From Podarcis liolepis (taxonomy: Eukaryota): a stretch of DNA of 64,000 bases. Shown here piece after piece: positions 5,788 to 46,504 of this stretch (within the stretch, counting starts at the first letter, position 1; every line of letters starts with the position of its first letter). The DNA lies in assembly GCA_965112155.1 (NCBI GenBank), contig OZ218103.1; one strand, given 5' to 3'. The translations under genes and the position numbers were made by a program. The notes under the pieces are model-generated. The model had not been told where the DNA came from and searched no databases. It worked only from the letters and a program-made list of their open reading frames with translations.

Positions 5788-5789
<2 letters not shown>

Positions 5790-5835
<46 letters not shown>
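5790..5835 (+). repeat. (TAT)n microsatellite
   Basis: Perfect trinucleotide run. Confidence 0.97.
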
Positions 5836-7976: not shown

Positions 7977-8975
7977 TTACCTGGGACCTCGTCGGCAAAG
8001 CAACTTTTTCAGGCTAGCCTGAAACTGATCTGAAAGGGAAAAGCAAATGAGGGGGCTTACAGAGCAGTTCGAATAAGCCAGAATGCTAGATAAGCCAGAG
8101 GCTACAAATCCTGCAGGAGTTTGTGGGAGGCTGTGGGTGGCTGAGAGGTATATCACCACTGAGCATGGTATCCACATCAGAATGAAAACCGCCAATACGG
8201 TCAGGATCATGACAGTTGCTTTCCTGTTGAGCCGAATGCTTGAGGATGAGTGGACCACCACCATCTTCCTGAACCAGAGGGAATGGACGATTCTGGAATA
8301 GCACAGGACCAAGAGAAGCACAAAGGGGAAGAAGGCAACCCCACCAAAGAGAACAAAATACAGGTATGTTTGCCTCGGCGTCATCAAAAGCGTACAGTAT
8401 CGAGCATCTTCAAGCACGACGACTCCTTGGTGTATCCAGTTGGGGACAGACACAGTGAAGCCCATGAGCCACATGACCATGCAGAGAAGAAACCTCTGGA
8501 GTGAATTTGCTGGGAATGAGCAGGTGGGATGAACAACCGCCAGGTATCTCAGGATGGAGGTGACCACCATGCTGTAGAAGCTGCAGAACATGGTCCACAT
8601 GGAAAAGCTCTGGCTGCTGACACACACAGCCAAGCCCATCTCCCAGTCCTCATAGACAAATGTGAGCAGCAGCACAGTGACATTGTAGAGGAGGAAGATC
8701 AGGTCAGAGATGGTGATGTTGACCATGAGAGTGTTGGTCATGGCAGAGATGGAGTTGGTGCTCCTGCTGCTCCTGAAGCCCTCAATCAGGACCAAGAGCA
8801 TTAAGAGGTTGCCAGCAAAGCCAACCAACAAGATGAGGCCACAGAAAGAAGCAAAGATGTATCTCAGCTGTGTCACTGTCAGGCCACCAAAGCTGCCGTC
8901 TGTCCCATGAGAAGAGGCATTGAAAGTCTTGTTGGAAGCATGAAAGAAATCTTCGCTGGTTGTTGTGAGCTCCAT
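7977..8975 (-). CDS. Orphan galanin-receptor-like class A GPCR (copy B), 332 aa, single coding exon
   Basis: Seven hydrophobic segments. Motifs: TM1 GN, TM2 SDL, ECL1 DWEMG..C, TM3 SILRY, TM4 W, ECL2 YC, TM5 P..CYSRI, TM6 MWIP, TM7 YSNCSVSPLIC, helix 8 SDQFQASLKKLL; N-terminal sequons NKT/NAS. Start set at MELTTTSE (ATG 8973-8975) because the ORF-track start runs through a (TTG)n microsatellite upstream of a splice acceptor. Confidence 0.9.
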   Translation of the reverse strand: MELTTTSEDFFHASNKTFNASSHGTDGSFGGLTVTQLRYIFASFCGLILLVGFAGNLLMLLVLIEGFRSSRSTNSISAMTNTLMVNITISDLIFLLYNVTVLLLTFVYEDWEMGLAVCVSSQSFSMWTMFCSFYSMVVTSILRYLAVVHPTCSFPANSLQRFLLCMVMWLMGFTVSVPNWIHQGVVVLEDARYCTLLMTPRQTYLYFVLFGGVAFFPFVLLLVLCYSRIVHSLWFRKMVVVHSSSSIRLNRKATVMILTVLAVFILMWIPCSVVIYLSATHSLPQTPAGFVASGLSSILAYSNCSVSPLICFSLSDQFQASLKKLLCRRGPR

Positions 8976-8996
8976 TATTCCAGTGTGAGGATGAAA

Positions 8997-9416
8997 CTGA
9001 GAAAATATGAATCTACAACAACAACAACAACAACAACAACAACATATCATTGTCCTGGCCCCTGAGTAATGGGTATATGTATATTAAAAATTGCCATATT
9101 AATGCATTAAACACAAATCACAGCAATAATAACAAAAATGATAGGATTTCAGATGTATGTTTTAGATTCTGCACTGAGCAGGCAGTTGCATGAGATGAAG
9201 TGCCCTTACAAGTCTATGAGTCTCTGTTCAAGCACTGCTTTCCATTCATGCCCCTGAATGGGTCAGCATCCCCATACTCCGCTGAATCTGAGCATCTCAG
9301 AAGAAGCGTTGGGAGTGTGGACAAGGTAGAGACTTCCTTCCAAACATGAGCCAGCATAAGGGCACATCTCCTGCACTCCATTGTGATCATAAGGGTCACC
9401 ACATGTCTGCACTCAC
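8997..9416 (-). other. Probable 5'UTR intron of GPCR copy B
   Basis: Donor CTG|GTGAGT at 9416; acceptor attttctcag| at 8997, 21 nt upstream of the ATG. Confidence 0.5.
9015..9044 (+). repeat. (CAA)n microsatellite
   Basis: Gives the spurious poly-Cys start of ORF 7977-9050. Confidence 0.95.
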
Positions 9417-10809
9417 CAGCTTAACCCGTGGTTTGGACTGCAAAGGGACAGCAGAAGGTTAGCTTTGACACCAGTCACTGCCGAACCAAAAGATCAATCC
9501 CTCCCCACTACCACCACAAAGCAAAAGGAAACAGCTTTCCCCTTGAGTAAAATGTTCCTCCCAGTTCATTTAACAAGGCTCTAGGTACAGTATTCAGCAG
9601 CAATTGCTAAAGGGTGAAAGCTTACCAGGCCATTGTGTTTTATGAACAGACATCAGAGAGGGCACAATTCACTTGTAAATCATTGCAGCTGGGTTGAGAT
9701 AGAGATCAGTTCTGCAATTCCCATATCTGTTCCCAGCAGATGGTGACTTATATTACTTTGCCTGGCTTGTGGGGATAAGATGTGTTCTCTCTCCCCCTCC
9801 CTTGTAGTCATGGTGGAGAAGGAGGCGGGGCTTGCAGAATAGAGACACAATTTTCACATGTCGCAGCATGTGGATGATCTATGGGTAAAGAGGGAGGGAA
9901 ACAAAGAAGATATTTTAAGCTCTCCTGCAATACATAGAAATCTATCCCCCATGAAGATGCATGGCCGTTAGATATCTCACCAGTATGGTTTGCTAGGGAG
10001 GTGGCTAGTAAAGCTACACCCAAGACAAACCCACATTCAGGAGATAAGCATAGGTCTCCTGTACTTCTCTTTACCCACAGTATATGTTTGCATGTTCTGT
10101 GACTATCCCTGGTCTTCCTGGGTGGTGGAAATGGTGTAGGTAGACCCTGGTGTAGTCAATGTAGTGTTCGCCACAGGGTGTTGCACTACAACTTCCATCA
10201 GCTCCAGCCTATATGGCCAATGGTCAGGAATGATGGAAGTTGCAGTCCAATGACATCTAGAGGACACAAGGGTTACTAACATGTCACCTGTGGGCACTCT
10301 TGTTCCCTCAGGGTTTCTCCCCCCCCCCCCACCAAACCCTAAGAGTAGAGCACTTGAAAATAGGGCATCCCTAACGCCCAGAGACACAATTTTTACATTG
10401 TGAGTGAATCGTAGCAATTAACCTGAGTACTCTCTAAACAAGTTACCTAGGAACTGAACTTGCTTTAAGGAGATCTTGAATAATAATACAGTGCACAAGT
10501 AAAGGAATGTGGAAACCACATCCCAGGCATGTGGAAGAGTGCTTCCTGCTCTTGTACTTACACTGTGAAAGAGGCATACACATCTCTCAGCTTTGTCAAT
10601 GTTAGGTAAGCAAAGCCGGCCCTACCGTTAGGCAGAAGGAAGTAACAGACCGAACTGTGTGTACCATGCAGCTTGCTTTGTGTCCCCTAACCTAGCCTTC
10701 TGCCCTCAGATGCAATGGATGATGCTTTCCTGTTACTAGTTTTGAAGTAAAAAACACAAAAACCTGGTGATCTGGGTAGCTGTTGTACATGGGATTGGGA
10801 GAAGTGCCA

Positions 10810-10985
10810 GGTGTAGTGATTAGAGAGTTTCGGACTAGGAGCTGTAAAAACCAGGTTTCAAGTGCCCACTTAACCAGGAATATCACTTGGGTGACCTTGG
10901 GCAAGTCAGAATCTCTTACCCTAACCAGCTTTGCAGGGTTGTTGTGAAGCTAAAACAGGGAAGGTGAGATATAAAAATAAATAAA
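10810..10985 (+). mobile_element. MIR/CORE-type tRNA SINE
   Basis: gtgtagtgattagag...gggtgaccttgggcaagtca...cagggttgttgtga core. Confidence 0.7.
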
Positions 10986-12420
10986 TACTGTCCTGTGCTT
11001 CAGGCAGCAAAATGTCATGAGCTGGTCCTGGGTAGGAGGACTCAGAGACTGATTGGGAGACTACAGCAGTGACTATTTCACTTGTTGCAGTAACCACTAG
11101 CTAAATTTGCAAACCAAAAGAGTGTGGGAGTGAATCAACTGACAACATTAACTTATCCCTTCCTTTGATAGCAGCCTTTGATTTTCAAAGTCCTCATACT
11201 TCACATAAACTGTCGATTCCACTGAAGACTCTTCCAAAAAAGCATTTTTATTCAGTGTTGTGATATGTGAGCATGATACATCATTGGATAAATAATTGGA
11301 CAGAGCTAGGCAGATAATCAGATATAAATATCTTTAATGGGTTTGACAGCCCCTTGTACTATTCCTCTGTAGACACAATTTTTGGGTCAAGTGATGATCA
11401 GAGAGTTTTTGGTTGCAACACACACCATATATTAAAAGAACTCTTATACCATGTTAGCAGTCACGGCTTCTCCCAAAGAATCCTGGGAACTTAAGAAGTT
11501 AAGGGTGCTGGGAAATGTAGTCCTTTGAGGGGTTTCCTAACAACTCCCAGTACTCTTCTGAGATAAGTCCGGGAGGTCTCTTCTTCCACACACTTCAGCA
11601 TGAAATCTTACGAAGAGGGTTTGTTCCAGGGAAACTTGCTGAAAAGAAATAGCTATTCACTTGTTCCATGAACAGCAGTTTCAGTTGTGTTGAGTTTGGC
11701 TCCTGCCCACATCAGCTCTATGCTCCACGCTGAAGAACTTCTATGGAAGTCTTCTCAAAAGTAAGTCTCACTGAGTTCACTGAGGATTACTCCCTTGTTA
11801 AGCGTGTATAAGAATGCAATCTAAACATGTCTGCCTAAGAGACAGCAAGCAGAAATATGTTTTCTCTTTCCCCATTTTTTTGTGAGAAATATAGAATTGG
11901 TTAGCAGCCTTTATAGGACTTTTGTGTTAGTTCAGAGTCTGATTAGTTAGTTCTCATTGATGCATTTGTATGGAATTTTTAACAGAAGAATTGTAAAAAT
12001 AATTGTGTGGATTGTTGCTTTGTGAGGATGCTGATCATCTTCCTTAAGTGCCTGTTGTGCCCTTACAGAATCAAGGTTCCCAGAGTTCATAGCTAGAAGC
12101 AATGACAGGTTTGAAATGCAAAATCGTAGTGTACCCACGCACAAGCAGTTTCTTTCCAAGCTATGCCTGTACATGAAATCCATTACAGCCTTCCCCAAAC
12201 TGGTGTCCTCCAGATGTTGTTGAACTACAGCTCCACCCATCATGTCCAATGGTTAGAGATGATGGGAAAAGTAGTCCAACAAAATCTGGAGGGCACCAGG
12301 TTGAGGAAGGCTTGGATAGAAGGCATAACCATTTGATACTTTGTAGTGTATTGAATAGGGTACTGGCATTTTTAATTTCTCCATAATACCAAGAAGACAA
12401 TCATTGCTGAATTGTCATAG

Positions 12421-12781
12421 TAAAGGTAAAGGGATCCCTGACCATTAGGTCCCGTCGTGACTGGCTCTGGGGTTGCGGCGCTCATCTCACTTTATTGGCC
12501 GAGGGAGCCGGCATTTGTCTGCAGACAGCTTCCGGGTCATGTGGCCAGCATGACTAAGCCACTTCTGGTGAACCAGAGCAGCGCACGGAAAGGCCGTTTA
12601 CCTTCCCACCGGAGCGGTACCTATTTATCTACTTGCACTTTGACGTGCTTTCGAACTGCTAGGTTGGCAGGAGCCGGGACCCAGCAACGGGAGCTCACCC
12701 CATCATGGGGATTCGAACCGCTGACCTTCTGATCGGCAAGTCCTAGGCTCTGTGTTTTAACCCACAGCACCACCCGTGTCC
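12421..12781 (-). mobile_element. Sauria SINE, full length
   Basis: (ACCTTT)n tail and tRNA-like head; TSD ctgaattgtc(a/c)tag at 12407-12420 and 12782-12795. Confidence 0.92.
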
Positions 12782-12960
12782 CTGAATTGTCCTAGGATAT
12801 GCCATATTCTGGCATATAGTGTAGAAGAGAGACAATGTGGTATGGTGGTTGGTGTGTTGGACAAGGACCTGGGATACCAGGGTTCTTGGGCCAGTCACAG
12901 TCTCTGAGCCTAACCTACCTCACAGGGTTGTTGTAAGGATTCAATGAGGTTGGGGAGAAC

Positions 12961-13090
12961 CAGTGCTATTTTTCTAGAAAAAGAGGTGCCAGAACTCACC
13001 ATAAATGCCTCCTTTGTATAATGGCAATGGCACCCACCTGAGGGGTGTCGGAACTGAGTCCCAGTGAGTTTTGGCTGAAAAACAGCCCTG
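12961..13090. mobile_element. hAT MITE inserted in a MIR-like SINE (about 12838-13150)
   Basis: TIRs cagtgctatttttc / gaaaaacagccctg; 8-bp TSD gggagaac. A second copy in the opposite orientation lies at about 18288-18422. Confidence 0.85.
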
Positions 13091-13791
13091 GGGAGAACCA
13101 TGTATGCCACCTTGTTCTCTGCAAAGAAAAAGATGGGATATAAAGGCAATGGAAAAAAGAATAATGATAAGTTTTAAGAGAAGCTTGGTTTGGGAAGAAA
13201 AAGAGCTATATCTTCTTCACATTAGGGAGCTTCAGGTAATTATGCTGTATAGGATAATTTGGCTGTTAATGGTAGAGGAAAAATGAACCACACTCTTGTT
13301 TCTCACTGAGACCTCATTAGCCCATTCTACAAGTCAATAGATTTCTCAGCTTAAATATTAAAGGTTATTTCAGGGACTCTTAATTCCCAGCCCGGAAGCT
13401 TCAGCACAATTAATGTTCTCTCCAGTGACCCCTGTCTGTTGCTGCTACTGGAACCATTTCAGGTAAACGAACGTACCATATTCCTTGGGAATGAATCTGT
13501 GTCCAATTAATGGCACAAACAAGTCAGAAATCACCAATTCAAAGGTGTCGTTTGGTAGTCCAAACAAAAGGCAGCCCTTCTCTGCATGGATATGAGCTGA
13601 GTATCAAGTTATAGTTACAATGTTATTGGCAGAAAGCAACTGATCAATAATGTGAATCAAAAATGCAACGGAATGCTTCATAAGATATTTTAGGAAATGA
13701 AGCCCTTAGACAGGATTTAACATAAACTAAAGGTCTCCTGGAGTTACCATATTTTTTTTCTAGAAGTAGATTCAAATATTTTAAATGAGTA

Positions 13792-14017
13792 CAGTGGTAC
13801 CTCGGGTTAAGTACTTAATTCATTCCGGAGGTCCGTTCTTAACCTGAAACTGTTCTTAACCTAAAGCACCACTTTAGCTAATGGGGCCTCCCGCTGCCAC
13901 CACACCACCGGAGCACAATTTCTGTTCTCATCCTGAAGCAAAGTTCTTAACCTGAAGCACTATTTCTGGGTTAACGGAGTCTGTAACCTGAAGCGTATGT
14001 AACCCGAGGTACCACTG
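13792..14017. mobile_element. Tc1/mariner-type MITE
   Basis: TIR cagtggtacctcgggtta ... taacccgaggtaccactg; TA TSD. Confidence 0.92.
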
Positions 14018-14202
14018 TACAACTAAATAAGTCACCACGTATGATTTTCTCCTTATGGGCTCTGTGTATGTCACATAGGGCAGGGACAGAGAATCGGTGG
14101 CCCTCCAGCGCTGACGTAAGGGATCCCTCAGACAGGCTACAGGACAGGAAATAATAAATTCTTGTTCCACACAACTTTAGCAAAGCGTATTGTACACCTT
14201 AG

Positions 14203-15210
14203 TCACGTTCTACCTAACACTTCTATCTTACCCAAATGGATAGGACCTACTTGACGAATTCCCTTTCCTACCCGCCTAAAGAGGTTCCTCAGCCTGGCCT
14301 GGAACTGGAAAGAAAGGCAGAAGCAGATCATGGGGTTAATGCAGCGGTTGGCGAAGGCAAGGAGAGACGTCAGGTGATAAGCCAAGTACATAGGGGCTGT
14401 GGTTAGCAATTGGTCGTACTTGATAAAGAAAATCACCAGCCAATATGGGAGCCACATGACCACCAGGGTCACCGTGGTGACCAAAGCCATCACTGAAGCT
14501 CGCCAGTTCACTTGCAGGCTGGAGGCTGTGTGCATAGAGAGCCCCCTCCTAACCTTGAGGTTACAGATGATCCTCAAGTAGCAGAAAACCATCAGCAATG
14601 TGGGAGGCAGGAAGCCCACCCCTCCCAGGAGCCGCAGGTAAAGGTTAACTTCCTTCCATGCCATTTGGTTCACGCAATATGTCTGCCCCTCCACGTGAAT
14701 GATCTCATAATTAATCCAGAGAGGAGTGGAGAATATAAGGCAGGTCACCCAGATGAGCCCGCAAGCGATAGCTATCTGCTTTTGGGAGATGGGCATCACT
14801 CTCACTGGGTGGAGGATAGCCGTATAGCGAAGCAGCGCGATGGCCAGCATGCTATAGAAGGCAGCAAAGGAGACCCACATGGAGAAGCTGTGGTTGGTGA
14901 CGCACAGCAGGCGGCCCAGGCGCCAGTCCCTGAAAAGGATGTTGCCAAACATCACAGGGGCATTGTAGAGGAGGAAGAGGAGGTCCAGGATCACGATGTT
15001 GAGGAAGAGAGGCTCCGTCAGGCGTGAGATGTGGCTGCCGCTCTTTCTTTGGAGACCTCGGAAAAGGATCCAGAGCAGCAAGCCATTTCCGGGCATGCCC
15101 AGGAGGAAGAAGAGGACATAGAGGACAGCAAACACATTCCTGCTATAATGGAGGAAAAGGTCGCTCAAGCCAGAGCTGGTGCCATTCCCTGCACTGGAAT
15201 TGGAGTCCAT
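14203..15210 (-). CDS. Orphan galanin-receptor-like class A GPCR (copy A), 335 aa, single coding exon
   Basis: Strong Kozak GCTACCATGG; sequons NSS/NGT. Motifs: TM1 PGNG, TM2 LDLLFLLYNAP, DWRLGRLLC, TM3 ALLRY, TM5 FLPP..CYLRI, TM6 MWLPY, TM7 FANRCINPMIC, helix 8 FQARLRNLF. Colinear paralog of 7977-8975. Confidence 0.92.
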   Translation of the reverse strand: MDSNSSAGNGTSSGLSDLFLHYSRNVFAVLYVLFFLLGMPGNGLLLWILFRGLQRKSGSHISRLTEPLFLNIVILDLLFLLYNAPVMFGNILFRDWRLGRLLCVTNHSFSMWVSFAAFYSMLAIALLRYTAILHPVRVMPISQKQIAIACGLIWVTCLIFSTPLWINYEIIHVEGQTYCVNQMAWKEVNLYLRLLGGVGFLPPTLLMVFCYLRIICNLKVRRGLSMHTASSLQVNWRASVMALVTTVTLVVMWLPYWLVIFFIKYDQLLTTAPMYLAYHLTSLLAFANRCINPMICFCLSFQFQARLRNLFRRVGKGIRQVGPIHLGKIEVLGRT

Positions 15211-24202: not shown

Positions 24203-24217
24203 CTATTCCAGAAGGTC
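24203..24217 (-). CDS. SORT1: SORT1 exon 20, coding part (DLLE*)
   Basis: ...ttcttcccag|GAC CTT CTG GAA TAG; completes the GGA-binding acidic dileucine motif. Confidence 0.93.
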   Translation of the reverse strand, partial: DLLE

Positions 24218-27200
24218 CTGGGAAGAAAAGAGGGGAAGATAATACTTCTTGTTAACATTTGATGATCATGATTCTTTGCAGTTTTGCTGTGGCAAATACA
24301 ACCCACTTAGCCCCACAGAGATATACAGCTGTTTCTTTTTCAAAGTGACATAAGCCAAAATCACATGCTTGGGGTTCAAATTTATCTTTCTAACCCAACA
24401 TGTACTGCTCAGAAAGATGCATGGTGTGCACACATACACATCAGTTACAATCACTTGCCTCATCAGAATCATCATGGTAGCCCGTTTTATTGGCATCTGG
24501 TGTGTCAACGCCATCAAAGCCGTTCGCTTCCGCATGCTGCTGCAGGACAGAGTATCGGTGAACCAGAAACCTAGGGGCATGATAAACACACATGAAATGA
24601 ACTTGGCCCTATGGCGGTAGCATCAACATTCTTTGAACAGAAGTGAATATAACATCCAGAGACTTTTGGAAGAACTTTATATGGGTTGCTGCTGAGACAC
24701 CATTTCTCTGGCTGTTTTATCTGGTCTAAGCCAATAAACACTGGGTATCTTTAGAGCCTATATAGGATTTTTTAAAAAAACTGGTAGTGCAACGATGCTA
24801 CATGAATCCATCTGTCATTTTGGGCTAAAGTGTCATGGGTCTGCAGCTGGCATGTAGTTTTATCTCTCCTGGCGAAGTTGTGGAACAGGTATTGGGATGG
24901 ATGAGGGATGAAGGCAAGAATAGAAGAGCCTGCTGTATCAGGCCAATGGCCCATCTAGTTCAGTATCCTCTTCTCACAGCAGCCAACTAGATGTCTATGC
25001 GAAGCTCAAAATCGGGCAAGACAGAGGTACTGTGGGCAGGCAAGCCTGCTGATCTAGGAATGTGTGACCAGGGCTGCCATGATCACGTTTGCAGTTTAGG
25101 GCTTCTCCTGGACTCAGAGCAGTTTATAGAGGTACCCATGACATCTGTTGTCAGGCACTCCTGGTCAATTTGCCAGTGGGATTCCTTTGTGAAGAAAGTG
25201 GACCTGACTATGGTAATTCATGCCCTGGTTACATCAGATTGGGTTATAATGTGCTGTACGTGGGTCTGCTTTTAAAGACAATTTAGAAGTGCCAGCTGGT
25301 GCAGACTGCTTAGCCCCCATAAACAGCTGTAGTCTGATATAAAGCCTTATTTGTACTAACTACAGTGGTTGCCAATGTGTTTTCAGGTCCAATCTAAAGC
25401 ACTGGTTGTTAGTTTTAAAGTCCTAAACCATTTGGGATCTGGTAATTTGAACAATTGCTTACACTTCTGTTTGGGCTCTAAGACCAGCCACAAATACCCT
25501 CCTTACAGGCCCACCACTAAGATCTATCAGGCCGACAAACATGAGAGCACCTTTCAGTGTTGGCCCTGTCCCTGTGGAACTCCTTCCCACAGAAGCCTCT
25601 CTGGCTTGTTTTAAATGGGCCTTACTGACTTCACTATCCCAATCTGCCTTAAACTGAATAAGGTTGGTGATTTTATAGTTACAACCCCTGCTGTTTTATA
25701 TGTATGTGTTATGTTACATAGCTACTGTTTTTCTGTTTTGAATTGGTTTCATGCTCTTAATTCTGAGCTGTGGTGGCAGAGTCTCTGGCACTGAAAGGCA
25801 GCATAAAAATAACTGAATAATAGTTAAAAGTAAGAATGATCTTGCCAATCCCTTCCCAAGGCTCACCTTCCTCCACAAACGTATTTCTTAATGATGACTA
25901 CTCCAGCTACAGCAGTCATAAGCATCAAGCCTATTACAGCCAGGATGACTGGAGTGGAGTTGGAGGAAGTAGACTGTAGAAAGAAAAGAGAGAGATGCAT
26001 TAAGATTTTATGACAAATTATTAGATCACTTCGATTACTGAGTCATTTCCATAATGATTCTCCTAGCATATTCTCCCTACCTCAATAACTTACTCTCTTG
26101 TCCTGCATGGATCACAGGAGGATTATAAAGATTTGGGGAGAGAGAATGAAACAGCTGATTTTGGAAAGGGTGAAATTTGACTACTTAGTTCAGAATGCCA
26201 AACCGCAGCTTCAACAGCCAATTTGGAAAGCTCATTCATTTTACTGCTTGAACAGAGTCAAGGTTAATATTGGCAAATAATTTTAAGAAAAACTGCTTCT
26301 CAAATATTAACGACAAATGGGCTGTTTTTCAAGCACTCTTTTTACATTGGTTAGAACAGTGTTTCCCAACCGGTGTTCCGCGGCACACTAGTGTGCCGTG
26401 AGACACCGGCTGGTGTGCCGTGGGAGGGAGGCGGGCGAGTCGGGCGGCGAGAGGCGGCGGCGGCGGCGAGGATCCGCGTCGAGCCGGGGGCGGCTCCGCG
26501 GTGCTGGTGCCGAGCGGCGGGGCAGCGCGCGCAAAAGGGAGGCGCGCGAGACAGCGGAGGAGGAGGAGGCCGGCATGTCCGGGCAGCAGCAGCAGCAGCA
26601 GCAAATCGCCGCCACCACAACAGCCGCTGCCGCCGTCCCTCAATCCCTCGCTCTGCTGCCTCCTCCCACCCCGGCAAGGGGAAGGGAAAAAACTTTAACT
26701 TTTGTGCGTCCCTCCCGGCGTGACGCTGCGCGCTGACGTCACGGGGCGGGGCTTTAATGGTGGTGTGCCGCGAGATTTTTTCCCGGTAAACAGGTGTGCC
26801 GTTGCCCAAAAACGTTTGGGAAACACTGGGTTAGAATACTCTCTTTCTACCTCTCATATATATAGGCAGCCTGCAGCCTTTGAACTATATGCAGCCCCCA
26901 GCCCAATTTCAGTTGACCCCCTGAAAGCCATCAGTGCAGGCCTCTGACAAGAGTGATCTGCCACTCTAGCACACTGGGGAGGAAAAAGAGAAGGGGGTTC
27001 AGAGAGAAAAAAGGGATGATTCCACTCACCAGTGGATTTCCCCTGCCAGCATATGGCCTCAAACAGAATAACTCAAGGAAATATGGCCCTTGACAGGAAA
27101 AGAAAGGTTGCCCACCCTTCCTCTCTTTATCTCTTTGCTCCACTTTCTTTCTGCATTTTTTAAAGCTTACCAGCTGGCTTGAGTTCAAGTAGTTGCTAGT

Positions 27201-28444
27201 GCATTTTTTCTTCAGATCAGTCTCTTCACGGATGGGATTTTCCCCACCAACACATTTGTCTCCTGGGATCTTCCGATATCTGAAATTCAACAAGAGTCTC
27301 AATAATCTAGTATTACGAAGCTTCTTTTATTAGTGACAGCTTTCCAAGCCACCTAAAATTAGCTAACCCCTTCATGTGCAAGCATCAGTGGGAAGTCGAG
27401 GACATGGTTTCACCATTGCCAGGCTGGGTATCCTCAAATCACCTGTCTGATATTCCCCAAAGCCATGGTTCTTTCAGGGCTGGGCATGTCATGTCTATAG
27501 GGCTGCAGTGGCCTCCAAGAAAACATGGAAGTCACATGACATGAAAGTCAAGAATCCTCAAACAATAAATGCACATGTCATGCTAAATTATTTCAGCTGC
27601 TTCTGGTCCACAGAATTTATAAGCCAAGATAGTTCTATCTAGAGAACTATCTCCCCACCCAATACAGAATACATAATGAACCACCTTAAATGTATTATAG
27701 ATGGCTATACTACATCTTCTACTGGAAGATATAGTGCCATGGTCACAAGAGCAAGGGGCATATTTTGATTCTAAGGGAGATTCTTACTGTTCCAGAAACA
27801 CAGCGTGCTCAGAGAGAGGAAGAGAATAAATTTACAGCCTATATGCAGGGCACCAGAATATAGTCCTCTTCCCAGTAGACTACATATATCTGTTTTATAA
27901 AAACAAATACACACAGGACCAAGCCATCTCCTCCATCAATAATACTATTATAATCATAGAAAATTACCCGCTGGTCTTTAGCCGCTCTCGCTTCCCATAT
28001 AGACAAAATTCTAGGTCGTGCCCCTTCAGCTCTGGCTGCTCCACACACTTGGAATGGTTTTCTGGGCGGTAGTAGCCAAAATCACTGCATCACAAATCCC
28101 AGGAGTAGAAAGACAGACGTTAACAACCCACACACAGTATGAGTATTGACTCATGCATCACTTCATTACTGCTGCAACTAAAAGACCTAGTATGTGGTTG
28201 CTCAAACTAGAATTATACATTTTTAATAGTTATTCAGGAATTTGGTGATAATACTTCACATGCCTAGTTGTATCACTGGCCCATTATACTGACAGAACAT
28301 TCAGGAGGAGAAACTACCCTATGAAGGAGCATCCAGTTTCTTCAGGGGTGGCAAATACATTTCAGCCCAATGGATGCATTGAGGGTTAGCCATGCTGCCA
28401 AGAGCCACATGCCAGCAGTGAGTGTGGTTGCAGTGGGTATAGCC

Positions 28445-28488
<44 letters not shown>

Positions 28489-31400
28489 AAACAGACAAGA
28501 AGACAAATGCTGGCTAAGTTGGGGCTGCAGAGGGGAGAATTCCCTGTGTTTTTTCTTCCCATTGCTAGCTTGGGGGCTTTCCTTCTACCCTAGTGCTGTA
28601 ATAGCAAGGAAAAGAAAAATGTCTTCAAGGTCTTAACTCTGAATGACACTGCACCATAGGGATAAATAGTTCCCATGTTAGAAGAGATTAGAAGAAAGAG
28701 AAAAGGTTTTAGAAGACTTTTCTGTTTCCTTCCTGTAGGAGCTCCTAACAAAGGCACTGCACCAGAGGAAGATGTGGAGATTTTCAAAAAAAATAAAAAG
28801 AGGTGCCAGAAGAAAAAAAGAGGGTTGTGGGTCACCAAAAATGGCAGGCCACAGGTTCGCCAAACCTGAATTATTTCCTACCAAGCATTAGCAATCTAAT
28901 TTGCTAATATGCAGCACACGTATCCATGGCAATGAATGTGGCCCTGAATGGAAAGCAGATTCAGTGTCAACAATGAACCCATGCAAACTGAAAAATTAGA
29001 ACAGAAACCCATTTCAGTGCTGCTTGATAAACTGGCTGTGAATGAAAATGTTTTTTAAATATTCAAAAACCAACAGCAGGTGGGAGAAGATGATAGAAAT
29101 ATTGGGTACTGATTCCTTCTAGGGCCCTCTAAAACAACCCCACAACCAGACTGACATCAATGTTATTACTGGTTTTGTACAGCCTCAAAATCTATTGTGA
29201 GAAATCCAGATTGATCTCTCCATTTCCCCAGCACTCAAAAACCAGTGCTAGGCTAAAACTTGTCCTCCAATTTTGCAAGGTCATTTCCCCCTTTGCAAAC
29301 TGGGGAGCTGTTTTCTGCACCTTTCATCACTGCTACATTTGTAGAAATTTGTGTGTGTGCGCATTGCTTGTCTTATTCAACCATATGAGGTGGCTAAGGA
29401 ACCCTCTTTTTCCTCACTGAGCTCACTTGAAGTAGTTTAGAACTTACACTGGCTTCCATTTCAACAAAACATCCTGGAACACCCACATAATTATGTGATA
29501 TCAGCAGCCATATGGGTATACCAGGAAGTACTGCTGGGATGTAAGCCAGCATACAGAAAGCTTTCCATGGCTGCAAGTGTGCACAAAATTTCAGCTTTTA
29601 AAAACAGCTTCTTAAAGCTTGGGTGTTCCAGGAAGTCCTGCCAAGCTGGAAACCAAAATGAAGTCCATGTTGCTGTGAATGTGGTGCTTTTGTTTACACA
29701 ACATTTCAAGAGAAAAGCAAGGTGCTTTAGCCATCTCATAAGGTGGTGGTAGTGGAAATATCTGCTTATTCCCACCTTGCTCTTTTTGAAGGCATGCTCA
29801 GTTCACACATACACCGCCCCCTTGAGTGGTTTTAAAAAAGAAGCCATTCAGGTTTAAGTCCAGCACTGTTCACGACACACGTTTATTACAGTAATTTGTG
29901 TACTCTGGACTATGGCTCTGAAAGTTTAAGGGATGCAAAGGCCATGTTCAGTCTTGTTATTTTCAGGTATGAATTAATCATATACCAGCAAATTCAGTTT
30001 GTGCAGTTAAAGTGAATTTGGCATTCTTGCACAATAAACCTGCTTACAATCCCCCCCACCCTGCCAAAACACCCTGGGATTTTTCTGGCAACAAAAGGGA
30101 TGGGGAAATGCACTGGAAAGTGTGAGATGCTGATGTTGTGCAGCATTATATCTGTGCAAACAAATCAGGATGAATGCTCAGTTAAACAGGTCGTCAGAAT
30201 GAGCCAGTACATGCTAGAGTCCAGTAGAACAAGCTACCAGCAACACAGTTCTGCTCCCTAACGTCTGCACTATTTTCCACCTTCTTAAATTACACTCCAC
30301 CCTTTTCGTTGTTCATTTTTCCACAGCTGAATGCTCCCTACAGAAGTTATCATGAGGGCCTTTTAAAAGCAGCACACACAAGCAAAGCTGAACATCAGAC
30401 GTGACTACTGCAAAACCTAGCGGCTTAAATGAGAAGCCATTAAGATGCATCTTATTTTCATGATCAAGTTCCCAGCCTGAGACTACAAGGAAAAGAATGA
30501 ACAAGCAAGCAGCATCTGCTTAAGACCCTGAACCACAGGAAGTCTCAGTAGGAACTTCTCATGGTCTAAAGCTGTGTGCACACCATACATTTAAAGGACA
30601 TGACTTCCCCTAAAGAATCCTGGAAGTTGTAGTTTGTTATGGGTGCTGGAAACTGCAGCTCTGTGAAGGGTAAATCACAGTCACCAGGATTCTCAAGGGG
30701 AAGTCATGTGCTTTAAATGTATGGTGTGTACACAGCCCAAGTGTACACACCATACATTTATTGTTTATTGTCCCTAATGCTGCCCCTCTCCCAATACCCC
30801 AGTTCCTGCCTGAGAACTTCAGATCATGCCAAAGCCAGATTTTGGTTCTGAACAAACAATGAGTTTGTATGATTTCTTTTAGTGAAGAGGATTTCTGCCA
30901 CTTTTGTCTCAAATAAATGGCGTAGGTATGTGCAACTGCATGACATCTGTTTGTGAAAGATCTGCCTGCTTAAAATCTTGCATGCTCCTTCAGCCACAGA
31001 AAATAGACCATCATTAACCTGCACATCTTGTTATACTGAAAATGGAATCTGGGTTGCAAAATGCGGCATTTCTTCTGAGAACCCCCAAGTTGCACCATAT
31101 TAAATCAATGTTGACTGCCTCCTTGAAAAACCTCACATTTATAGAGTCATAAAACCACAATTCTACATATGTCAGGAATGGGGAAACTGTGGCCCTGCAG
31201 CTAGGCTGCAGACCCCATTAATCATGCTGATTGGGCTGATTAGAGCTGCAGTCCAACATGTGGAGGGCCACAGTTTCCCCATCTCACTATTTCAGAAAAC
31301 GAACTGCAGAGTCTGATTTAATATTTCAGTGAAGCTGAAAGGTGGCAGGGTGGGAGTATGGTCACTCCCCAGGCCATTTCAGAACAGAAAAAAACACAGC

Positions 31401-34400
31401 CATGGAAATAGATTATGGGAGGAACTCTCCAAACATACCAGAGGAAGTCACCTAATGTGCAAGTGCAGACAGATGGTTGCTTGGTCACAACATAGTCTCG
31501 GCCATTCTGACAGAAAGATGACTTGCGAAGGCGCAGATATTCCTCCTTGTAGCCCAATATGCAGCCATCTGCAGGGTCATTGGGATTGCTGGAGTGAGCC
31601 AACCACTTTGTGTAGTCCTTCTCCATACCTAAGGAGGGAATAATGACCAGATGCCTGAGATAGTCAAAAACTACTAAAATTCTGTGAGCTTTTCTGTAGA
31701 ATTCTGTGGTGCAATCAGCCACAGAACTGGGGCAGGTACTCTCTGGAATTAAGGGGAGCTGCCCTGTAGCTTTCTCAAGTGCGGCAGCCTTTGTGGGGGA
31801 CAGGACATATCACATGGTTCCCCATGCCCCACCACCCTGTTACCCACTGCAGCAGAACAAAAAGAGGGGGAGGGAGGAAACCTCTCTCCTTCCTCTGCTG
31901 CCAATTAAAGGTAAGGAAAAGGAAGAGAGAGGAGTGTGGCCTGGCATAAATGGCTTTTTTCAGAGAGGGAGAAGGAACAGAAGATGGGTGTGCAATATTT
32001 CTGAGCCCTTACATTAGCTGGGGGGGGGATATTCCAAATTATCTTGGAGAAAAGTTTTAAAGTTTTGCTCCCCCCGCCCACAAAGAACTTGAGTAATTTC
32101 CAAATTAATCTGAGGCAAACTTCCTCATGTCTGGAGGAACTAACTTTTTTGTGGGGATTACACATGAAGAGGCAGCTAAAAGACCTGACCTGTGCATTCT
32201 CAAACACAGTATTACACCAGTAGCCTATTGAAGATGCTCTAATTCATGGGTAGGCAAACCAAGGCCCAGGGGCCGGATCCAGCCCAATTGCCTTCTAAAT
32301 CCAGCTTGCAGACATCAGGGAATCAGCACGTTTTTACTTGAGTAGAATGTGTGCTTTTATTTAAAATGCATCTCTGGGTTATTTGTGGGGCATAGGAATT
32401 CAATCATTCCCTCCCAATATAGTCTGCCCCCCCCCCACAAGGTCTGAGGGACAGTGGACCGGCCCCTGCTGAAAAAGTTTGCTGACCCCTGCTCTAGTTG
32501 CATCACATTTTTTAAATTCACAGATATAGGCAAGACAATTTGAAGACAAGCAGCTGGCTAGCATTCTTATTTGTTATAAAGGAAGAGATTACTCACACTC
32601 CCTGTTGAGAAGATCATTAAAATCAATAGTATACGAGATCCACTGACGAGACAGGAAGCTCTCTGTAAATCCCCAGATGCTAACATTCATCGATTTTGCT
32701 CCTGGCTCTGATGCCAGGCCAGTAAACATCATAGGATCCTTACTGAAAACATAGTTGTGCCAGCACTGCCCTTCATCTGTGGAGAACCTGAAACAGATAA
32801 GATTAGGAATGGAGGTTTGGCATTATCACTGTGGTTAATTTAGACTGACAGAAATCCTAACAAAGCTTAAGGCAGCCACTCTCAAATACTGGGGATGCAA
32901 GACAGGTGACAGGAATATTAGACTAAACTACATGCTTACAGTGGTACCTCGGGTTACATATGCTTCAGGTTACATACGCTTCAGGTTACAGACTCCGCTA
33001 ACCCAGAAATAGTGCTTCAGGTTAAGAACTTTGCTTCAGGATGAGAACAGAAATCGTGCTCCGGCGGCGCAGCAGCAGCAGCAGGAGGCCCCATTAGGTA
33101 AAGTGGTGCTTCAGGTTAAGAACAGCTTCAGGTTAAGTACGGACCTCCGGAACGAATTAAGTGCTTAACCTGAGGTACCACTGTACTTGCCACTTTGGGT
33201 TCCGCTGTACTGTGTCCGTTTCTGGGCACCACAATTTAAGAAGGATGGAATGTGTTCAGAGGAGGGAGACCAAGATGATCAAGGGGCTGGATACCAAGCC
33301 TTATGAGGAATGGTTTAGGGAGTTGGGTGTGTTTAACTTGGAAAAGAGGAGACTGAGAGGGTGGCATGATAGCCATGTTTGAATATCTGAAGGGCTGTCA
33401 CATGGAAGAGGGAACAAGCTCTTTTTCTCCTGCTTCAGAGGGCCTTAAGACCTGAACCAATGGATTCAAATTACAAGAAAGGAGTTTCTGACTAAACTTT
33501 AGGAAGAAATGCTTGCTGTTAAGAGCTATAATTCCCTTGGAAAATGGTGCACACTCCTTCATTGGAGGTTTCAAAACAGAGGCCGGAGAGTCATCTGTCA
33601 CAGATGCTTTAACTGTGATTCCTGCATTGTATGGGGTTGGACTAGATGACCTTTGGTGTGCCTTCCAAGTCTACAATTATACGACCCTGACTTCGTTACA
33701 AATGAGTGCCAGGAAAAAGTGATTTGCAATGGAGAAGTGGACAGGGGCAAGGAGTACATAATCCCTCTTCTTTTATCCTAGCTGGAATTCCAAACATATT
33801 TATGTCTGCCTGTTCTGGATGAGAGCTTGTTTTAAAAATGTAAATAGGGATAGAAATTAGTGGTTCTTCTGAAATCACTCCTCTCAAGCAACAGCTTCAT
33901 GGTTAGGATAGCCTCATTCCTTTCAAACATTCTAAATTGAGAACAATCCAGTTTCTTCCTTTACATCATTCTACAGCAGTGTTTCATAGAATTGGGTCCC
34001 CAGCTGTTGTTGGACTACAACTCCTAGCATCCCTGGCCACTGGTCCTACTAGCTGGGGATGATGGGAGTTGTAGTCCAACAAACAGCTGGGCCCCCAAGT
34101 TTGAGTAACACTGTTCTATCGGGATAGTTCCAGGTGATGTAACAGTGAGGAAGTGGGCACTGAACTTCTCATGTCCTCCCACCATAGAAGTATTAACAAA
34201 ATTAAGTTCCTGCATACTTAATCACATTGATAGGATGATCCGTTTGCTCAACAGCCACAATGATGCCCCCAGAATCCAGGATGGCATAGTGATGGGGTCC
34301 TTCAAGCATCCGTGCCCAGGTGTAGCCGCCATCATCCGAAATGTAAACATCTGGGTTTATTATTGAAATGGCATCCCCAACACTTCCTGCAACACAAGGC

Positions 34401-37400
34401 CATTGCCAATACAATGGATATAAGTACACTACAGTTCTCTCATGAAGGTCCACCACTTGTATTCATTCCTAAATTCACCCACCCTTACTGGCAGAAGAAG
34501 GAAAAAAACAGATCTGTAAAATACAGAAACCAGTAGACAATCCCAAGTAAAGCCTCATCCTTTGCCAATTATCTTACATCGTATTATATGTGCATAAGGA
34601 TAATTCATTACCGTGAGCAATGACAATTCCAACAGCATTGGGCTCAGACAGAGGAGCCATTGGTACATTCAGCTTCTGGGAGATGCTGTAAGATGCATGG
34701 ATGTGAAGGCTGCACTGTAAATGTAAGACAACCCCAATAAGAAAAGGAGGCAAAATGGTGAAGCATTAACATATTTGGTCTTATTAAAAGCAAAACAACC
34801 AAAAGTGCTTGAATTTCAACAGAATTGCCACAAAAGAGAACCTTTACTGGTGCAAATCCAAGGCAAACTGAACCCAAGCTTCCAAGCTTTATTAGCTGAC
34901 AAACTGTGTTTTGAATAACACATGGCCCAAGGCAGCTTCTTCCACACGTAAGCCTGTTCCCTTCTGTTGTTGTTGTTGTTTTAAATCAGGCTGAATTACA
35001 AACTGTTTTCTGTTGCATAGTTTGGGCCCAGCTCACTGCACAAAGTTTGTTGAGCATTCCACTCCTCTTGCAAAACATCCCTAAAGATATGCTTTACTTT
35101 TCATTTTATTGCAAGTTAGATGCACTAACCACGCAACATGAGATAATACAACTATTGGTAAGCCAATTTCCTAATGAATATTTACAAAGGCTACAGCAAC
35201 TTTAATACGTTTAATGCTATTTCAAGACCTATAAATTTGGTCTCTAACTATGATTTTGCACACCCTGTACCACCACACCCTAATCTTGCACTTGAGTCAT
35301 ACACTCAATTTACTAGGAAGCATAGTTTTCAGTAGAACCAACTTCCAAACAAGTAACTTAGAACTATAACTTGGCCTGACAATATCATCCTACATCCAAT
35401 ATATAAACATACAAACCTTTTCCTTATTTTTGGCGGTTGAGTCACATTTGGCATTTTCAGGTTTCCTCAAGTGCACCCACTCTCCTCCTTGATCAAAGGT
35501 AATCACTGATTGGATGGAATTATCTGATTGAGAGGAGAAAATGTAAGTATTTGTGCAATAAATTCTATACAACATACTTACTCTCTGAGTAAAACCCAAT
35601 GCAGTGCTAAGTCTCGCATTCCATCAGTGAAGGATTTTATTGTGAAATGGAACATTATCTCCCTCTCCTCCTCCTATATGCCCCCTAAATCTGTTTGGGG
35701 AGATTATATTTGGGGAGGGTGTGGAGTAAGTGCTGAAGGTGGAGGGCGGGGAGAGCCCTGTGGCACAAGTGGAAATGTTTTCATTAATGGGATGCAAAGG
35801 TTGAATGCCACCTGCTATAATTAAAAAGTGGATGCTTTAATTCCCATGTCATGTAGCAACAATTCCAAGCATTCAAAAAGACAAGACATCTTGCAAAAGA
35901 GGACCAAACACTTTGAAAATAGAGTAAGACTGCAAACCACACTGCGCTGTTGAGACTCATTGGGTTGGCTCCTGCAGCACACCGGCTGAGTTCAATGTCA
36001 GGTCATCAGCCATTATTTCAGGGACAACCTTTCCAGTATTCACAGTTTGATATTAAAGCTCCAGCCCCTGTGCAGATGTGTCATCTTTCTGCTTCAAATA
36101 AGACACTCCCGATTCCCATCTATAGGAACTGTCAGCCTTACAACACAGTTTAACATATGAGTTTGGCTTCCTTACTTCACTCAGACTGGAACTTCACTCA
36201 GCACAGGAACAGATCAATGTTGATTATTCCTATTAACTTCGTAAAAGCAGAATTGTGACCAGTACTGCAAGACAAGTGAACTTGTCCTCGACAAACTAAG
36301 ACAGTAACATGATTGTTTCCTTTAGTTAAAACACCTATGAGAAAACCTAGCTTCAAAACAAGCTATTTCAAACAAATTAGCAAACATAAGCATTATGGAT
36401 CTCCCAAATGGATCTCCCAGAAATGCTTCAATTCCATTTCACTGAAAAGTTTCAGCTACTTTCCTAACAGATTCCTCAATCTTCAATTACAGCCAATCTA
36501 GAATCCATCAGTCCCGATGACACCATGCAGAAAGTGAGTACTTACCCTCAGAGAGCACACTAGTGATGTAGATGCCTCGCAAGGAGGTCACATTGGTGAA
36601 GTCCGTCTCTCCCCCTGTGGTGGTATAGAGATGCCTTTCTAGGGACTTCGAATATATGATGCCTTGGTCATCAGAGGTGTAAATTGTCCCATACCCAGTA
36701 TCTGCAAGAAAAACAACAGTTGCAGGGAGGGGGTCCTTCCAAAGAGTCCCTAAGGAACGGGGCTCTCATCTCAGTATTATCAACATTACCATTAATTTGA
36801 GATTACCAGGTCTAGAAAGCTGGTAGACCTATGTTTATGTCAATTTCGAAGCTGCCTAAAACTATTACAATAAACTGGATTGGGAAATAAATGAGGACTA
36901 TATGAAACAAATGAACAGGGCCATAGGGTTCTTGACAGAACAAGGGTGAGAACAGCGGGGAGACACCAGGATCTCAAGTACGTGGATGCAACTACAACTG
37001 TCCTTCCCTAAGGGATGATCCGGTAGTCTTTTCACCAAGTGTATGATTCAAATGCTTTACCATTATGAGCGCATATATGTTATTTCAAGGATTAACCTTA
37101 GGCGCCTATATGCTATACTGTTCATCTTCACATTTTAAGAGCTGGTTCTCTTCATGAACCATACAAAGTTTTGCTACCCACATCAAATGCATGTTGAAAT
37201 TCAGATCTTTTTAAGATTTTTAAGAACACACTACACCAAACTCCCTTCTCTCACCTCCAGGCTCATCTACATGCATGAACACCATGTCATCATTAGCTGC
37301 CAAGATAGAGTAAAACTGCTCTTGTCCAACTGAAGGAAGTTGTGCCATGTTCCAGGTTTCTCCATGATCCAGTGACACATGGATTCGTCTTGTAGTGCCC

Positions 37401-46400: not shown

Positions 46401-46504
46401 AAATAAATATTTAAAAATCCGTTCAACCTATCTGTATTACTTACCCCAGTGCTGTCACCAATCCAGGATAGAGTCACTGAGCCACTGAGATCATTGAAGA
46501 CACG
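24203..46504 (-). CDS. SORT1: Sortilin (VPS10P-domain receptor / neurotensin receptor 3), exons 2-20; exon 1 outside the window
   Basis: 19 exons with AG acceptors and GT donors (one GC) splice in frame. The product runs from [20 protein letters not shown] through the 10CC domain and TM helix to the tail FLVHRYSVL...HDDSDEDLLE*. Exon sizes match the mammalian SORT1 structure as recalled, except exon 19. Confidence 0.98.
24459..24570 (-). CDS. SORT1: SORT1 exon 19 (112 nt, GC donor)
   Basis: [37 protein letters not shown], then GAG|GCAAGT. Confidence 0.92.
25010..25810 (+). mobile_element. L2 LINE 3' fragment (SORT1 intron 18)
   Basis: Degenerate [10 protein letters not shown].(C)N.LYVGL.LKT..K.QLVQ motif typical of the L2 ORF2 C-terminus. 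Confidence 0.75.
25867..25973 (-). CDS. SORT1: SORT1 exon 18 (107 nt, transmembrane helix)
   Basis: [35 protein letters not shown]. Confidence 0.95.
26357..26828. mobile_element. Non-autonomous hAT element carrying a GC-rich internal fragment (SORT1 intron 17)
   Basis: TIRs cagtgtttcccaa / ttgggaaacactg; perfect 8-bp TSD ggttagaa (26349-26356, 26829-26836); subterminal gtgtgccg repeats. Confidence 0.92.
27171..27279 (-). CDS. SORT1: SORT1 exon 17 (109 nt)
   Basis: [36 protein letters not shown]. Confidence 0.95.
27968..28084 (-). CDS. SORT1: SORT1 exon 16 (117 nt)
   Basis: [38 protein letters not shown]. Confidence 0.95.
28446..28487 (+). repeat. (AC)n microsatellite, read as (UG)n in SORT1 intron 15
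   Basis: Perfect dinucleotide run. Confidence 0.97.
31439..31628 (-). CDS. SORT1: SORT1 exon 15 (190 nt)
   Basis: [12 protein letters not shown]...[42 protein letters not shown]. Confidence 0.95.
32245..32491. mobile_element. hAT MITE
   Basis: catgggtaggcaaac ... gtttgctgacccctg; 8-bp TSD ctcta(a/g)tt. Confidence 0.85.
32597..32787 (-). CDS. SORT1: SORT1 exon 14 (191 nt)
   Basis: [40 protein letters not shown]...DLLNRE. Confidence 0.95.
32939..33183. mobile_element. Tc1/mariner-type MITE (same family as 13792-14017, opposite orientation)
   Basis: cagtggtacctc TIRs; TA TSD. Confidence 0.92.
33205..33685 (+). mobile_element. CR1 LINE 3' fragment
   Basis: Encodes [34 protein letters not shown] (CR1 ORF2 C-terminus), followed by the CR1 3' end. 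Confidence 0.9.
33978..34113. mobile_element. Palindromic hAT-derived MITE
   Basis: Hairpin ggactacaactcc...gggagttgtagtcc. Related copies at about 10150-10280, 12180-12310, 31175-31285, 52470-52600 and 59095-59218. Confidence 0.75.
34218..34386 (-). CDS. SORT1: SORT1 exon 13 (169 nt)
   Basis: [56 protein letters not shown]. Confidence 0.95.
34612..34714 (-). CDS. SORT1: SORT1 exon 12 (103 nt)
   Basis: [34 protein letters not shown]. Confidence 0.95.
35417..35523 (-). CDS. SORT1: SORT1 exon 11 (107 nt)
   Basis: [35 protein letters not shown]. Confidence 0.95.
36546..36701 (-). CDS. SORT1: SORT1 exon 10 (156 nt)
   Basis: [51 protein letters not shown]. Confidence 0.95.
37255..37399 (-). 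CDS. SORT1: SORT1 exon 9 (145 nt)
   Basis: [48 protein letters not shown]. Confidence 0.95.
38125..38255 (-). CDS. SORT1: SORT1 exon 8 (131 nt)
   Basis: [43 protein letters not shown]. Confidence 0.95.
39063..39112 (-). CDS. SORT1: SORT1 exon 7 (50 nt)
   Basis: [16 protein letters not shown]. Confidence 0.93.
39618..39691 (-). CDS. SORT1: SORT1 exon 6 (74 nt)
   Basis: [25 protein letters not shown]. Confidence 0.95.
41032..41196 (-). CDS. SORT1: SORT1 exon 5 (165 nt)
   Basis: [26 protein letters not shown]...LLALSIE. Confidence 0.95.
42105..42207 (-). CDS. SORT1: SORT1 exon 4 (103 nt)
   Basis: [35 protein letters not shown]. Confidence 0.95.
42720..43110 (-). mobile_element. L2 LINE fragment
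   Basis: Reverse complement gives a degenerate LATVVH.LVTS.L.YC.AL..G.P..L..KLQLVQ motif. Confidence 0.7.
44807..44880 (-). CDS. SORT1: SORT1 exon 3 (74 nt)
   Basis: [24 protein letters not shown]. Confidence 0.95.
46445..46504 (-). CDS. SORT1: SORT1 exon 2 (60 nt)
   Basis: [20 protein letters not shown]; AG acceptor, GTAAGT donor. Confidence 0.95.

Follow-up and report, generated by a model that had tools for sequence, protein, structure and literature searches.

Two orphan receptor genes downstream of SORT1 in the lizard Podarcis liolepis: a probable GPR166 orthologue and an older paralogue

A 64,000-nucleotide stretch of contig OZ218103.1 from Podarcis liolepis (GenBank assembly GCA_965112155.1), hereafter the window, carries on its minus strand two open reading frames (ORFs) for G protein-coupled receptors (GPCRs), here called gene A and gene B. 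Both are probably working genes of one ancient vertebrate family of class A orphan receptors, gene A as the orthologue of GPR166 and gene B as an older paralogue, with a ligand that would be of peptide type and other than galanin. What is new is the placement of the lizard pair, one gene in the GPR166 clade and the other in a paralogue clade without a name; the family itself is known, and nearly undescribed. For the Podarcis genome, this gives two genuine orphan GPCR genes annotated downstream of SORT1.

The gene pair and its family

The two frames of the ORF list, 7977..9050 (357 aa) and 14203..15210 (335 aa), both match the Pfam domain 7tm_1 (PF00001), gene A with an E value of 4.9e-31 (108.6 bits) and gene B with 1.1e-33 (117.2 bits), and their products are 37% identical across 312 residues (E 2e-71). 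The original prediction, made from the letters of the window, had described two full-length seven-transmembrane frames on the same strand about 5 kb apart, paralogous and diverged, which is what was found; its "tandem pair" is not a recent one, the two being ancient paralogues in the trees. The coding features are as follows.

7977..8975, minus strand: gene A, intronless coding sequence (CDS), 332 aa plus stop, clade A, the lizard orthologue of the GPR166 clade; from the ORF, 7tm_1, the start of the orthologues, the tree and the AF2 model
14203..15210, minus strand: gene B, intronless CDS, 335 aa plus stop, in clade B; from the ORF, 7tm_1, orthologues in squamates, a crocodilian and turtles, and the tree
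8976..9050, minus strand: in-frame upstream extension of the gene A ORF, a (TGT)n microsatellite in the leader; from the sequence, and present in no orthologue

Neither frame is interrupted, so the coding regions are intronless; GC content at third codon positions (GC3) is 0.65 in gene A and 0.71 in gene B against about 0.42-0.48 for the window as a whole, as expected of genuine coding sequence. Translation of gene A almost certainly begins at M26 of the ORF (MELTTT, 8975), because all its orthologues start at the corresponding Met; the extension at 8976..9050, where (TGT)n reads as poly-Cys (25 codons) and where read mapping flagged a repeat (9003-9053), is probably untranslated. A tblastn search of the window with six family members as queries revealed no third copy and no pseudogene remnant.

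Regarding conservation, gene A has orthologues in Zootoca (96% identity), Rhineura (85%), turtles (70%), caecilians (65-69%) and salamanders (63-67%), and a second amphibian group is 47-55% identical to it; those of gene B are found in Podarcis raffonei (97%), Rhineura (80%) and turtles (59-63%), and also in an alligator. With 70% identity to turtle and 65% to caecilian, gene A has persisted as a conserved gene over hundreds of millions of years, in line with the original view of an old, uncharacterised receptor kept in reptiles, and both genes are, to judge from their sequences, intact and constrained members of an old receptor family. The automatic names given at NCBI are mostly galanin-receptor-like (GALR1/2/3), and also C3a-receptor-, CCR8-, urotensin-receptor- and allatostatin-A-receptor-like, a jumble that is the mark of an unnamed family. 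Its limits are sharp: a profile built from 21 members and scanned over 1.84 billion representative proteins returned family members at E 1e-129 to 5e-56, among them proteins from skink, newt, coelacanth, paddlefish, gar, lampreys and cats, and generic class A receptors from about 1e-48, which is a clean break.

Trees were computed with FastTree (155 proteins) and with IQ-TREE, the latter in a quick and a careful run on 58 rows (careful: LG+C20 with posterior mean site frequencies, PMSF, and bootstrap) and in a quick run on 83 rows with denser outgroups. One cluster of many short Logan/ENA/JGI contigs (P0057), which may be primate or human pseudogene pieces, was excluded from alignments and trees. 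The family is monophyletic in all of them (100/99 in the careful tree, with a stem of 0.98; 99 by the Shimodaira-Hasegawa-like approximate likelihood ratio test, SH-aLRT, in the 83-row run). Within it, the careful tree has lampreys branching first and paddlefish next, followed by three clades: clade A (100/99) comprises amphibians, turtles, squamates including gene A, and mammals, the last being sister to the sauropsid clade A genes at 99/97 on a stem of 1.15 substitutions per site; sauropsid clade B (100/100) includes gene B and is joined by newt (Lissotriton) and gar at 92/98; clade C (100/99) unites amphibians and a skink. The path from lizard to turtle is about 0.48 substitutions per site for gene A and about 0.85 for gene B, both far below saturation. 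For each species that yielded two, members of clades A, B and C share a scaffold or chromosome (Zootoca, Rhineura, Tiliqua with all three, Elgaria, Paroedura, Emydura with both on one 11-Mb scaffold, Rhinatrema and Ambystoma), which fits an old local gene cluster; the topology places the origin of gene B in a local duplication predating tetrapods, its descendants being kept in sauropsids, newt and gar.

As for the surroundings of the family, it shares a group (96/90) with galanin-receptor-like, GPR54/kisspeptin-receptor-like, allatostatin-A-receptor-like and GPR151-like proteins, apart from the receptors for somatostatin and for melanin-concentrating hormone (MCH). A maximum-likelihood tree was among the checks that the original prediction had proposed; in two IQ-TREE trees the family nests neither in the galanin receptor (GALR) group (97/87; SH-aLRT 96) nor in the kisspeptin-receptor-like group, outgroups being named from their clusters and the GALR group comprising GALR1b, amphioxus GALR2b-like and urchin GALR1-like sequences and no tetrapod GALR1-3. 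The family is thus placed by its phylogeny as a separate lineage of the galanin/kisspeptin/allatostatin-A/GPR151 group and not as a galanin receptor subtype. In three of the four trees its sister is a GPR151-like protein of a frog (FastTree 99; SH-aLRT 92 and 93); this position, which joins two long branches and relies on a single sampled GPR151-like sequence, becomes a polytomy in the bootstrap tree.

The family was thought, in the original prediction, to have been lost in mammals. This is contradicted for clade A, which is intact across many mammals and nested beside the sauropsid genes, and it fits clade B only, of which no mammalian member was found in the searches made. A search with a cat protein returned intact placental relatives from carnivores, rhinoceros, equids, alpaca, hippo, bovids, pig, mole, hedgehog, shrews, elephant, tenrec, golden mole, sengi, anteater, sloth, lemurs, galago, marmoset, squirrel, mole-rat and rat, together with many marsupials; Pongo and Sapajus yielded low-quality or fragmentary models only, and no mouse protein was among the matches. 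Birds and teleosts gave no family member in the protein searches, the profile scan or the trees; one teleost candidate (P0058, E 5e-48) was rejected, as it groups with chemerin-like receptors in the tree.

This distribution leads to the name. GPR166P has been described as an isolated Rhodopsin orphan that joins other receptors only at 27% identity (Gloriam et al., PMC2117022), and as a pseudogene in human and mouse that is present in dog and rat (Haitina et al., PMC2651185 Table 2). The taxon pattern of the mammalian clade fits this published presence and absence, and the start of the published human GPR166P sequence (PMC2117022 supplement), read by eye, has the mammalian-clade motifs ...ANGLMLLVV... 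and ...FYSMVATALLRH...; as far as that opening part of the sequence goes, both observations fit the mammalian clade being the published GPR166/GPR166P. Gene A is then assigned as the lizard orthologue of the mammalian clade by the 99/97 support and by the cat protein, whose identity is 46% with gene A and 32% with gene B; gene B is classed with clade B as a paralogue, and is not GPR166 in the strict sense. The name Gpr165 was rejected, that receptor being placed with TACR/PROKR/GPR83 (PMC6504862), and in the 2019 GPCR "cartography" paper no unnamed clade could be matched to the family without Ensembl identifiers. The literature that mentions GPR166 gives no function or ligand for it.

Mammalian GPR166 and gene A share, besides their clade, the signature L3.49-R, MWxPC and SPxxC; unlike gene A, the mammalian members have a very long stem, mostly LRH at 3.49-3.51 (LRY in opossums), no Ser-rich first intracellular loop (ICL1) and a tail of 25-50 residues. 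The stem of the mammalian clade (P0211, P0238-P0279) is about ten times the length of the sauropsid branches; along it LRY became LRH, the Ser-rich ICL1 was lost and the tail was gained, with repeated pseudogenisation afterwards (human, mouse), a course that suggests altered function or relaxed constraint.

Receptor motifs, ligand pocket and signalling

Residues of gene A were numbered from a HMMER alignment to human GALR1 (N56 = 1.50, D91 = 2.50, C118 = 3.25, F318 = 8.50), and the motifs were also checked in a multi-family alignment. The sites that set the two genes apart are listed here.

8544..8552, minus strand: gene A L142-R143-Y144 (3.49-3.51), Leu for the Asp of DRY (SILRY), aligned with GALR1 D132-R133-Y134; coordinates derived by hand
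8166..8177, minus strand: gene A M267-W268-I269-P270 (6.47-6.50), MWxP for CWxP, from the alignments
8043..8057, minus strand: gene A S307-P308-L-I-C311 (7.49-7.53), SPxxC for NPxxY, aligned with GALR1 N299-P300-I-I-Y303
8745..8774, minus strand: gene A Ser-rich ICL1 insert RSSRSTNSIS, opposite a five-residue gap in GALR1; the Ser run is kept in non-mammalian clade A
14824..14832, minus strand: gene B L127-R128-Y129 (3.49-3.51; ALLRY), from the alignments
14323..14337, minus strand: gene B N292-P293-M-I-C296 (7.49-7.53; NPMIC), from the alignments

With MWLP at 6.47-6.50 of gene B, both genes have three replacements relative to the class A core, at D/E3.49, C6.47 and Y7.53. They retain N1.50, D2.50, R3.50, W6.48, P6.50, P7.50 and the disulfide cysteines of transmembrane helix 3 (TM3) and the second extracellular loop (ECL2), residues that are near-invariant across the family, and Y226 of gene A aligns with GALR1 Y5.58. 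The original reading of the motifs, with D3.49 to Leu, Y7.53 to Cys and CWxP to MWxP in both genes and with D2.50, R3.50, Y5.58 and the ECL2 disulfide cysteines kept, was thus confirmed by the alignments; ICL1 is indeed five residues longer than in GALR1, but its richness in Ser, which had been ascribed to both genes, is a trait of non-mammalian clade A (5-9 Ser), gene B having three Ser there.

The altered switches differ in age. Position 3.49 is never acidic in the family, being Leu in tetrapods, Val in coelacanth and lamprey, and Leu or Phe in paddlefish and gar, and 6.47 is Met in every member except lamprey. At position 7.53, lamprey, coelacanth, gar, newt and amphibian clade C have Tyr, paddlefish and squamate clade C have Phe, and Cys occupies the site in sauropsid clade B and throughout clade A, with its mammals; read on the trees, the change from Tyr to Cys arose twice, each time by a single TAY-to-TGY transition.

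At the C-terminus, gene A ends 14 residues past F8.50, with helix 8 and a Cys, no tail and one Ser/Thr, and this short length is conserved from caecilians to lizards; gene B has a tail of 32 residues with a single Ser/Thr. The stop codon of gene A lies within CCCAG|GTAACC (7977-7985), which resembles a splice donor; a spliced C-terminal extension is unsupported, since the clade A orthologues from caecilians to lizards all end here and no RNA reads cross the site.

For gene A, AF2 predicts (pLDDT 78, pTM 0.78) a fold of seven helices and helix 8, with a beta-hairpin in ECL2 and long TM1 and TM2 ends flanking the ICL1 insert. Foldseek matched it to opioid, somatostatin, orexin and galanin receptors, with class A receptors at all top places and GALR1 as the match of highest identity (26%), and a search of a protein atlas returned generic class A neighbours only. 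The predicted fold supports a peptide-receptor type and nothing more specific.

Each receptor would act at the cell surface, and its ligand would be a peptide or protein, because of the N-glycosylation sites, the ECL2 hairpin and the TM3-ECL2 disulfide cysteines. Coupling to G proteins is probably retained, because D2.50, R3.50, Y5.58, W6.48, P6.50, N7.45 and P7.50 are kept. In class A receptors an acidic residue at 3.49 normally restrains R3.50, and Tyr7.53 normally stabilises the active state. With no acidic partner, R3.50 may be less restrained and the inactive state less firmly locked, with basal activity perhaps higher; through Y7.53C the Tyr that forms the active-state bridge to Y5.58 is lost, and the signalling output is for that reason probably retuned. 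As there is almost no C-terminal tail to phosphorylate, desensitisation, if any, would proceed via the Ser clusters of ICL1 and the third intracellular loop (ICL3).

It is unlikely that the two proteins are instead atypical receptors that do not signal through G proteins, whether as decoys or scavengers, as arrestin-biased receptors or as modulators of another receptor. Atypical chemokine receptors (ACKRs) characteristically have altered DRY motifs. As in these and other degenerate-DRY receptors, the DRY motif of the family is naturally altered in an otherwise intact seven-transmembrane core, D3.49 being absent throughout the family and Y7.53 absent from clade A and sauropsid clade B. Unlike ACKRs, the family has its place in the tree outside the chemokine/chemerin group, keeps R3.50 and has no Ser/Thr-rich C-terminal tail. 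Retention of R3.50, Y5.58, D2.50, W6.48, P6.50, N7.45 and P7.50 for more than 400 million years is hard to explain without G protein coupling, and the phosphorylated tail usual for arrestin-driven scavenging is missing from gene A and reduced to one Ser/Thr in 32 residues in gene B, which weakens the scavenger behaviour that the original prediction had considered; its suggestion of constitutive or biased behaviour, made from the altered microswitches, stays a hypothesis.

The possible sister GPR151 bears on the same question. The frog GPR151-like protein resembles the family in a non-acidic 3.49 (Ala), M6.47 and a residue other than Tyr at 7.53 (Phe), and human GPR151 has V-C-F at 3.49-3.51, no ionic lock and a structure that resists activation (PMC13167728), a rewiring that would favour an atypical receptor. 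R3.50, lost in human GPR151, is kept in the family, and the polar lock that GPR151 places on W6.48 with R2.61, D/E3.29 and E6.51, together with K3.39 in the sodium site (PMC13167728), is absent from it: the corresponding residues are L/M2.61, Q/H3.29, C/Y6.51 and Ser at 3.39 (S132 in gene A, read off the TM3 alignment block). The HMMER similarity to the solved GPR151 (7e-17) is weaker than that to GALR1.

That the genes are additional galanin, spexin or kisspeptin receptor subtypes, as GALR or KISSR ohnologues kept in non-mammals, is less probable still. The resemblance to the galanin branch noted from the start is real: the best matches among solved structures are GALR1 (E 1.9e-25) and GALR2, the NCBI names are mostly of the galanin-receptor-like kind, and GALR1-3 share with the family the broad peptide-receptor group, a similar ECL2 hairpin, F7.32 and TM7, with gene A locally similar to GALR1 in TM7 and ECL3 (LAYSNxSVxP, TPAxF). 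GALR1-3 nevertheless differ in forming a separate clade, in having DRY and NPxxY and in an ICL1 that is five residues shorter, while the genes of the window, as the original prediction had stated, are distinct from them, lying outside the GALR clade (and outside the kisspeptin-receptor-like group) and being intronless and devoid of both motifs, with an identity to GALR1 of only about 26%. The GALR1-3 genes have coding introns.

The pocket argues in the same direction. In GALR1 the galanin contact and support residues are Q2.61, H3.29, F3.32, H6.51, H6.52, H6.55, E271, V274, L277, S7.31 and F7.32, the last contacting W2 of galanin (PMC9173784). Gene A has at these positions L, Q, S, C, S, I, A, S, Q, G and F, respectively, so that 10 of the 11 differ, including Q2.61, H6.51, H6.52 and H6.55, and F7.32 is the one kept; gene B keeps H3.29 and has Tyr at 7.32. 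Because the galanin-type pocket is not conserved, galanin or spexin would be unlikely ligands.

Points against the proposed assignment and its wider meaning

Several points weigh against reading the pair as working genes with a GPR166 orthologue among them. The link to the name GPR166 goes through the presence/absence pattern and the by-eye reading of the start of the published sequence. The raised basal activity, the retuned output and the peptide ligand proposed above are drawn from general GPCR knowledge. The core is not fully canonical: with Y5.58 aligned, the TM5 Pro of the family (P217 in gene A) stands one residue ahead of P5.50 of the outgroups. The clade A orthologue of Rhineura floridana (P0025), although 85% identical to gene A, has Gln at 3.50 (SILQY), which could be a genuine loss of the key Arg in one lineage or an assembly error. 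Finally, zero reads fell on the CDS of gene A and its flanks in four RNA runs of the same species mapped to 6800-12799, the runs being of unknown tissue, represented by 6-12% of each and mapped with no control gene, so that neither expression nor silence is shown. Gene A lies wholly within the mapped stretch, which also takes in the presumed 3' end of gene B but not the CDS of that gene; the small "RNA?" runs X1-X14, at 5-11% of words and about the level of low-coverage DNA, were excluded. As for the displaced TM5 Pro, it may be a one-residue move of the TM5 bulge or an indel within the helix.

Decay or silence of one or both ORFs, with frames open by chance or after a recent loss of function, is very improbable: the missing RNA reads, a family prone to loss (pseudogene in human and mouse, poor models from Pongo and Sapajus, no member recovered from birds or teleosts) and the roughly 1.8-fold faster evolution of gene B by tree path lengths speak for it, but the ORFs are full length with complete structural residues and elevated GC3, intact one-to-one orthologues at 59-97% identity occur in squamates, turtles, crocodilians and amphibians, and a frame of 1 kb could not stay open neutrally over such times.

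Beyond the reading of two working genes with G protein coupling probably retained, a broader one is tentatively raised, although it is rather unlikely. The GPR166 family, with its clades A, B and C, may be a fourth, overlooked arm of the galanin/kisspeptin/allatostatin-A receptors, sister to GPR151, devoid of an acidic 3.49 since before the lamprey split and with two paralogues in which Y7.53 became Cys independently. If this were true, the arm would have a distinct, naturally "unlocked" signalling mode and an undiscovered peptide ligand, and that ligand would share the loss pattern of the receptors, being absent from human and mouse and apparently from birds and teleosts.

Kept from lamprey through to most mammals, the family has nevertheless received almost no study, probably for the reason that human and mouse, the main species of receptor research, have it as a pseudogene. 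Its patchy loss offers a handle for a ligand search by phylogenetic profiling, and rat, dog, reptile and amphibian models exist; the natural L3.49 and C7.53 variants are test cases of how a receptor may dispense with the DRY and NPxxY switches.

SORT1 and the remainder of the window

The neighbouring gene is SORT1, as had been proposed.

24203..46516, minus strand: SORT1 (sortilin) exons, from exon contexts, Pfam, a match in the Protein Data Bank (PDB) and the terminal exon

It spans from above 46.5 kb down to a stop at about 24.2 kb. Positions 32-87, 280-330, 364-423 and 421-446 of the Pfam profile Sortilin-Vps10, followed by 2-40 of Sortilin_C, are matched collinearly from 41 kb to 32.6 kb on the minus strand; one exon compared with the PDB has sortilin as its best match (3e-26, against 4e-9 for SorCS2), and the last coding exon, preceded by a clean splice acceptor, closes with DLLE* at 24203-24217. 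Gene B starts about 9 kb downstream of this stop and gene A lies another 5 kb on, all three on the same strand. For mammals, record lengths give a hint that GPR166 may be located on a chromosome other than that of SORT1. Minus-strand poly(A) signals occur below the SORT1 stop at 23869, 22014, 21741, 21421, 21264, 20937, 20842 and 20088, and the 3' untranslated region of SORT1 probably extends several kb past the stop at 24203 (within 20088-24202).

As for the repeats, near-identical frames (...RELTPSWGFEP...) occur at 12400-12799 and at about 58235-58525, and this element is probably similar to a short interspersed nuclear element (SINE). In the four RNA runs, 6800-7599 has no depth, and depth is confined to repeat pieces at 7600-7700 and 12400-12799, where about 90% of the reads continue into sequence unlike the window. 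Reads of either strand gather at 12400-12799 and show numerous variants and loose ends, being transcripts of many genomic copies. A 30-base piece at 7622-7653 attracts RNA reads by the hundred, with flanks that are unlike the window (agreement 0.96-0.98 for loose ends at 7622 and 7653); the piece belongs to an abundantly expressed sequence that is encoded elsewhere. Pfam gave no significant match for the ten longest open frames on both strands of 1-8008, which leaves a multi-exon gene downstream of gene A unconfirmed; 5517-5876 is a long run of the A/T homopolymer type that reads as poly-Lys or poly-Leu.

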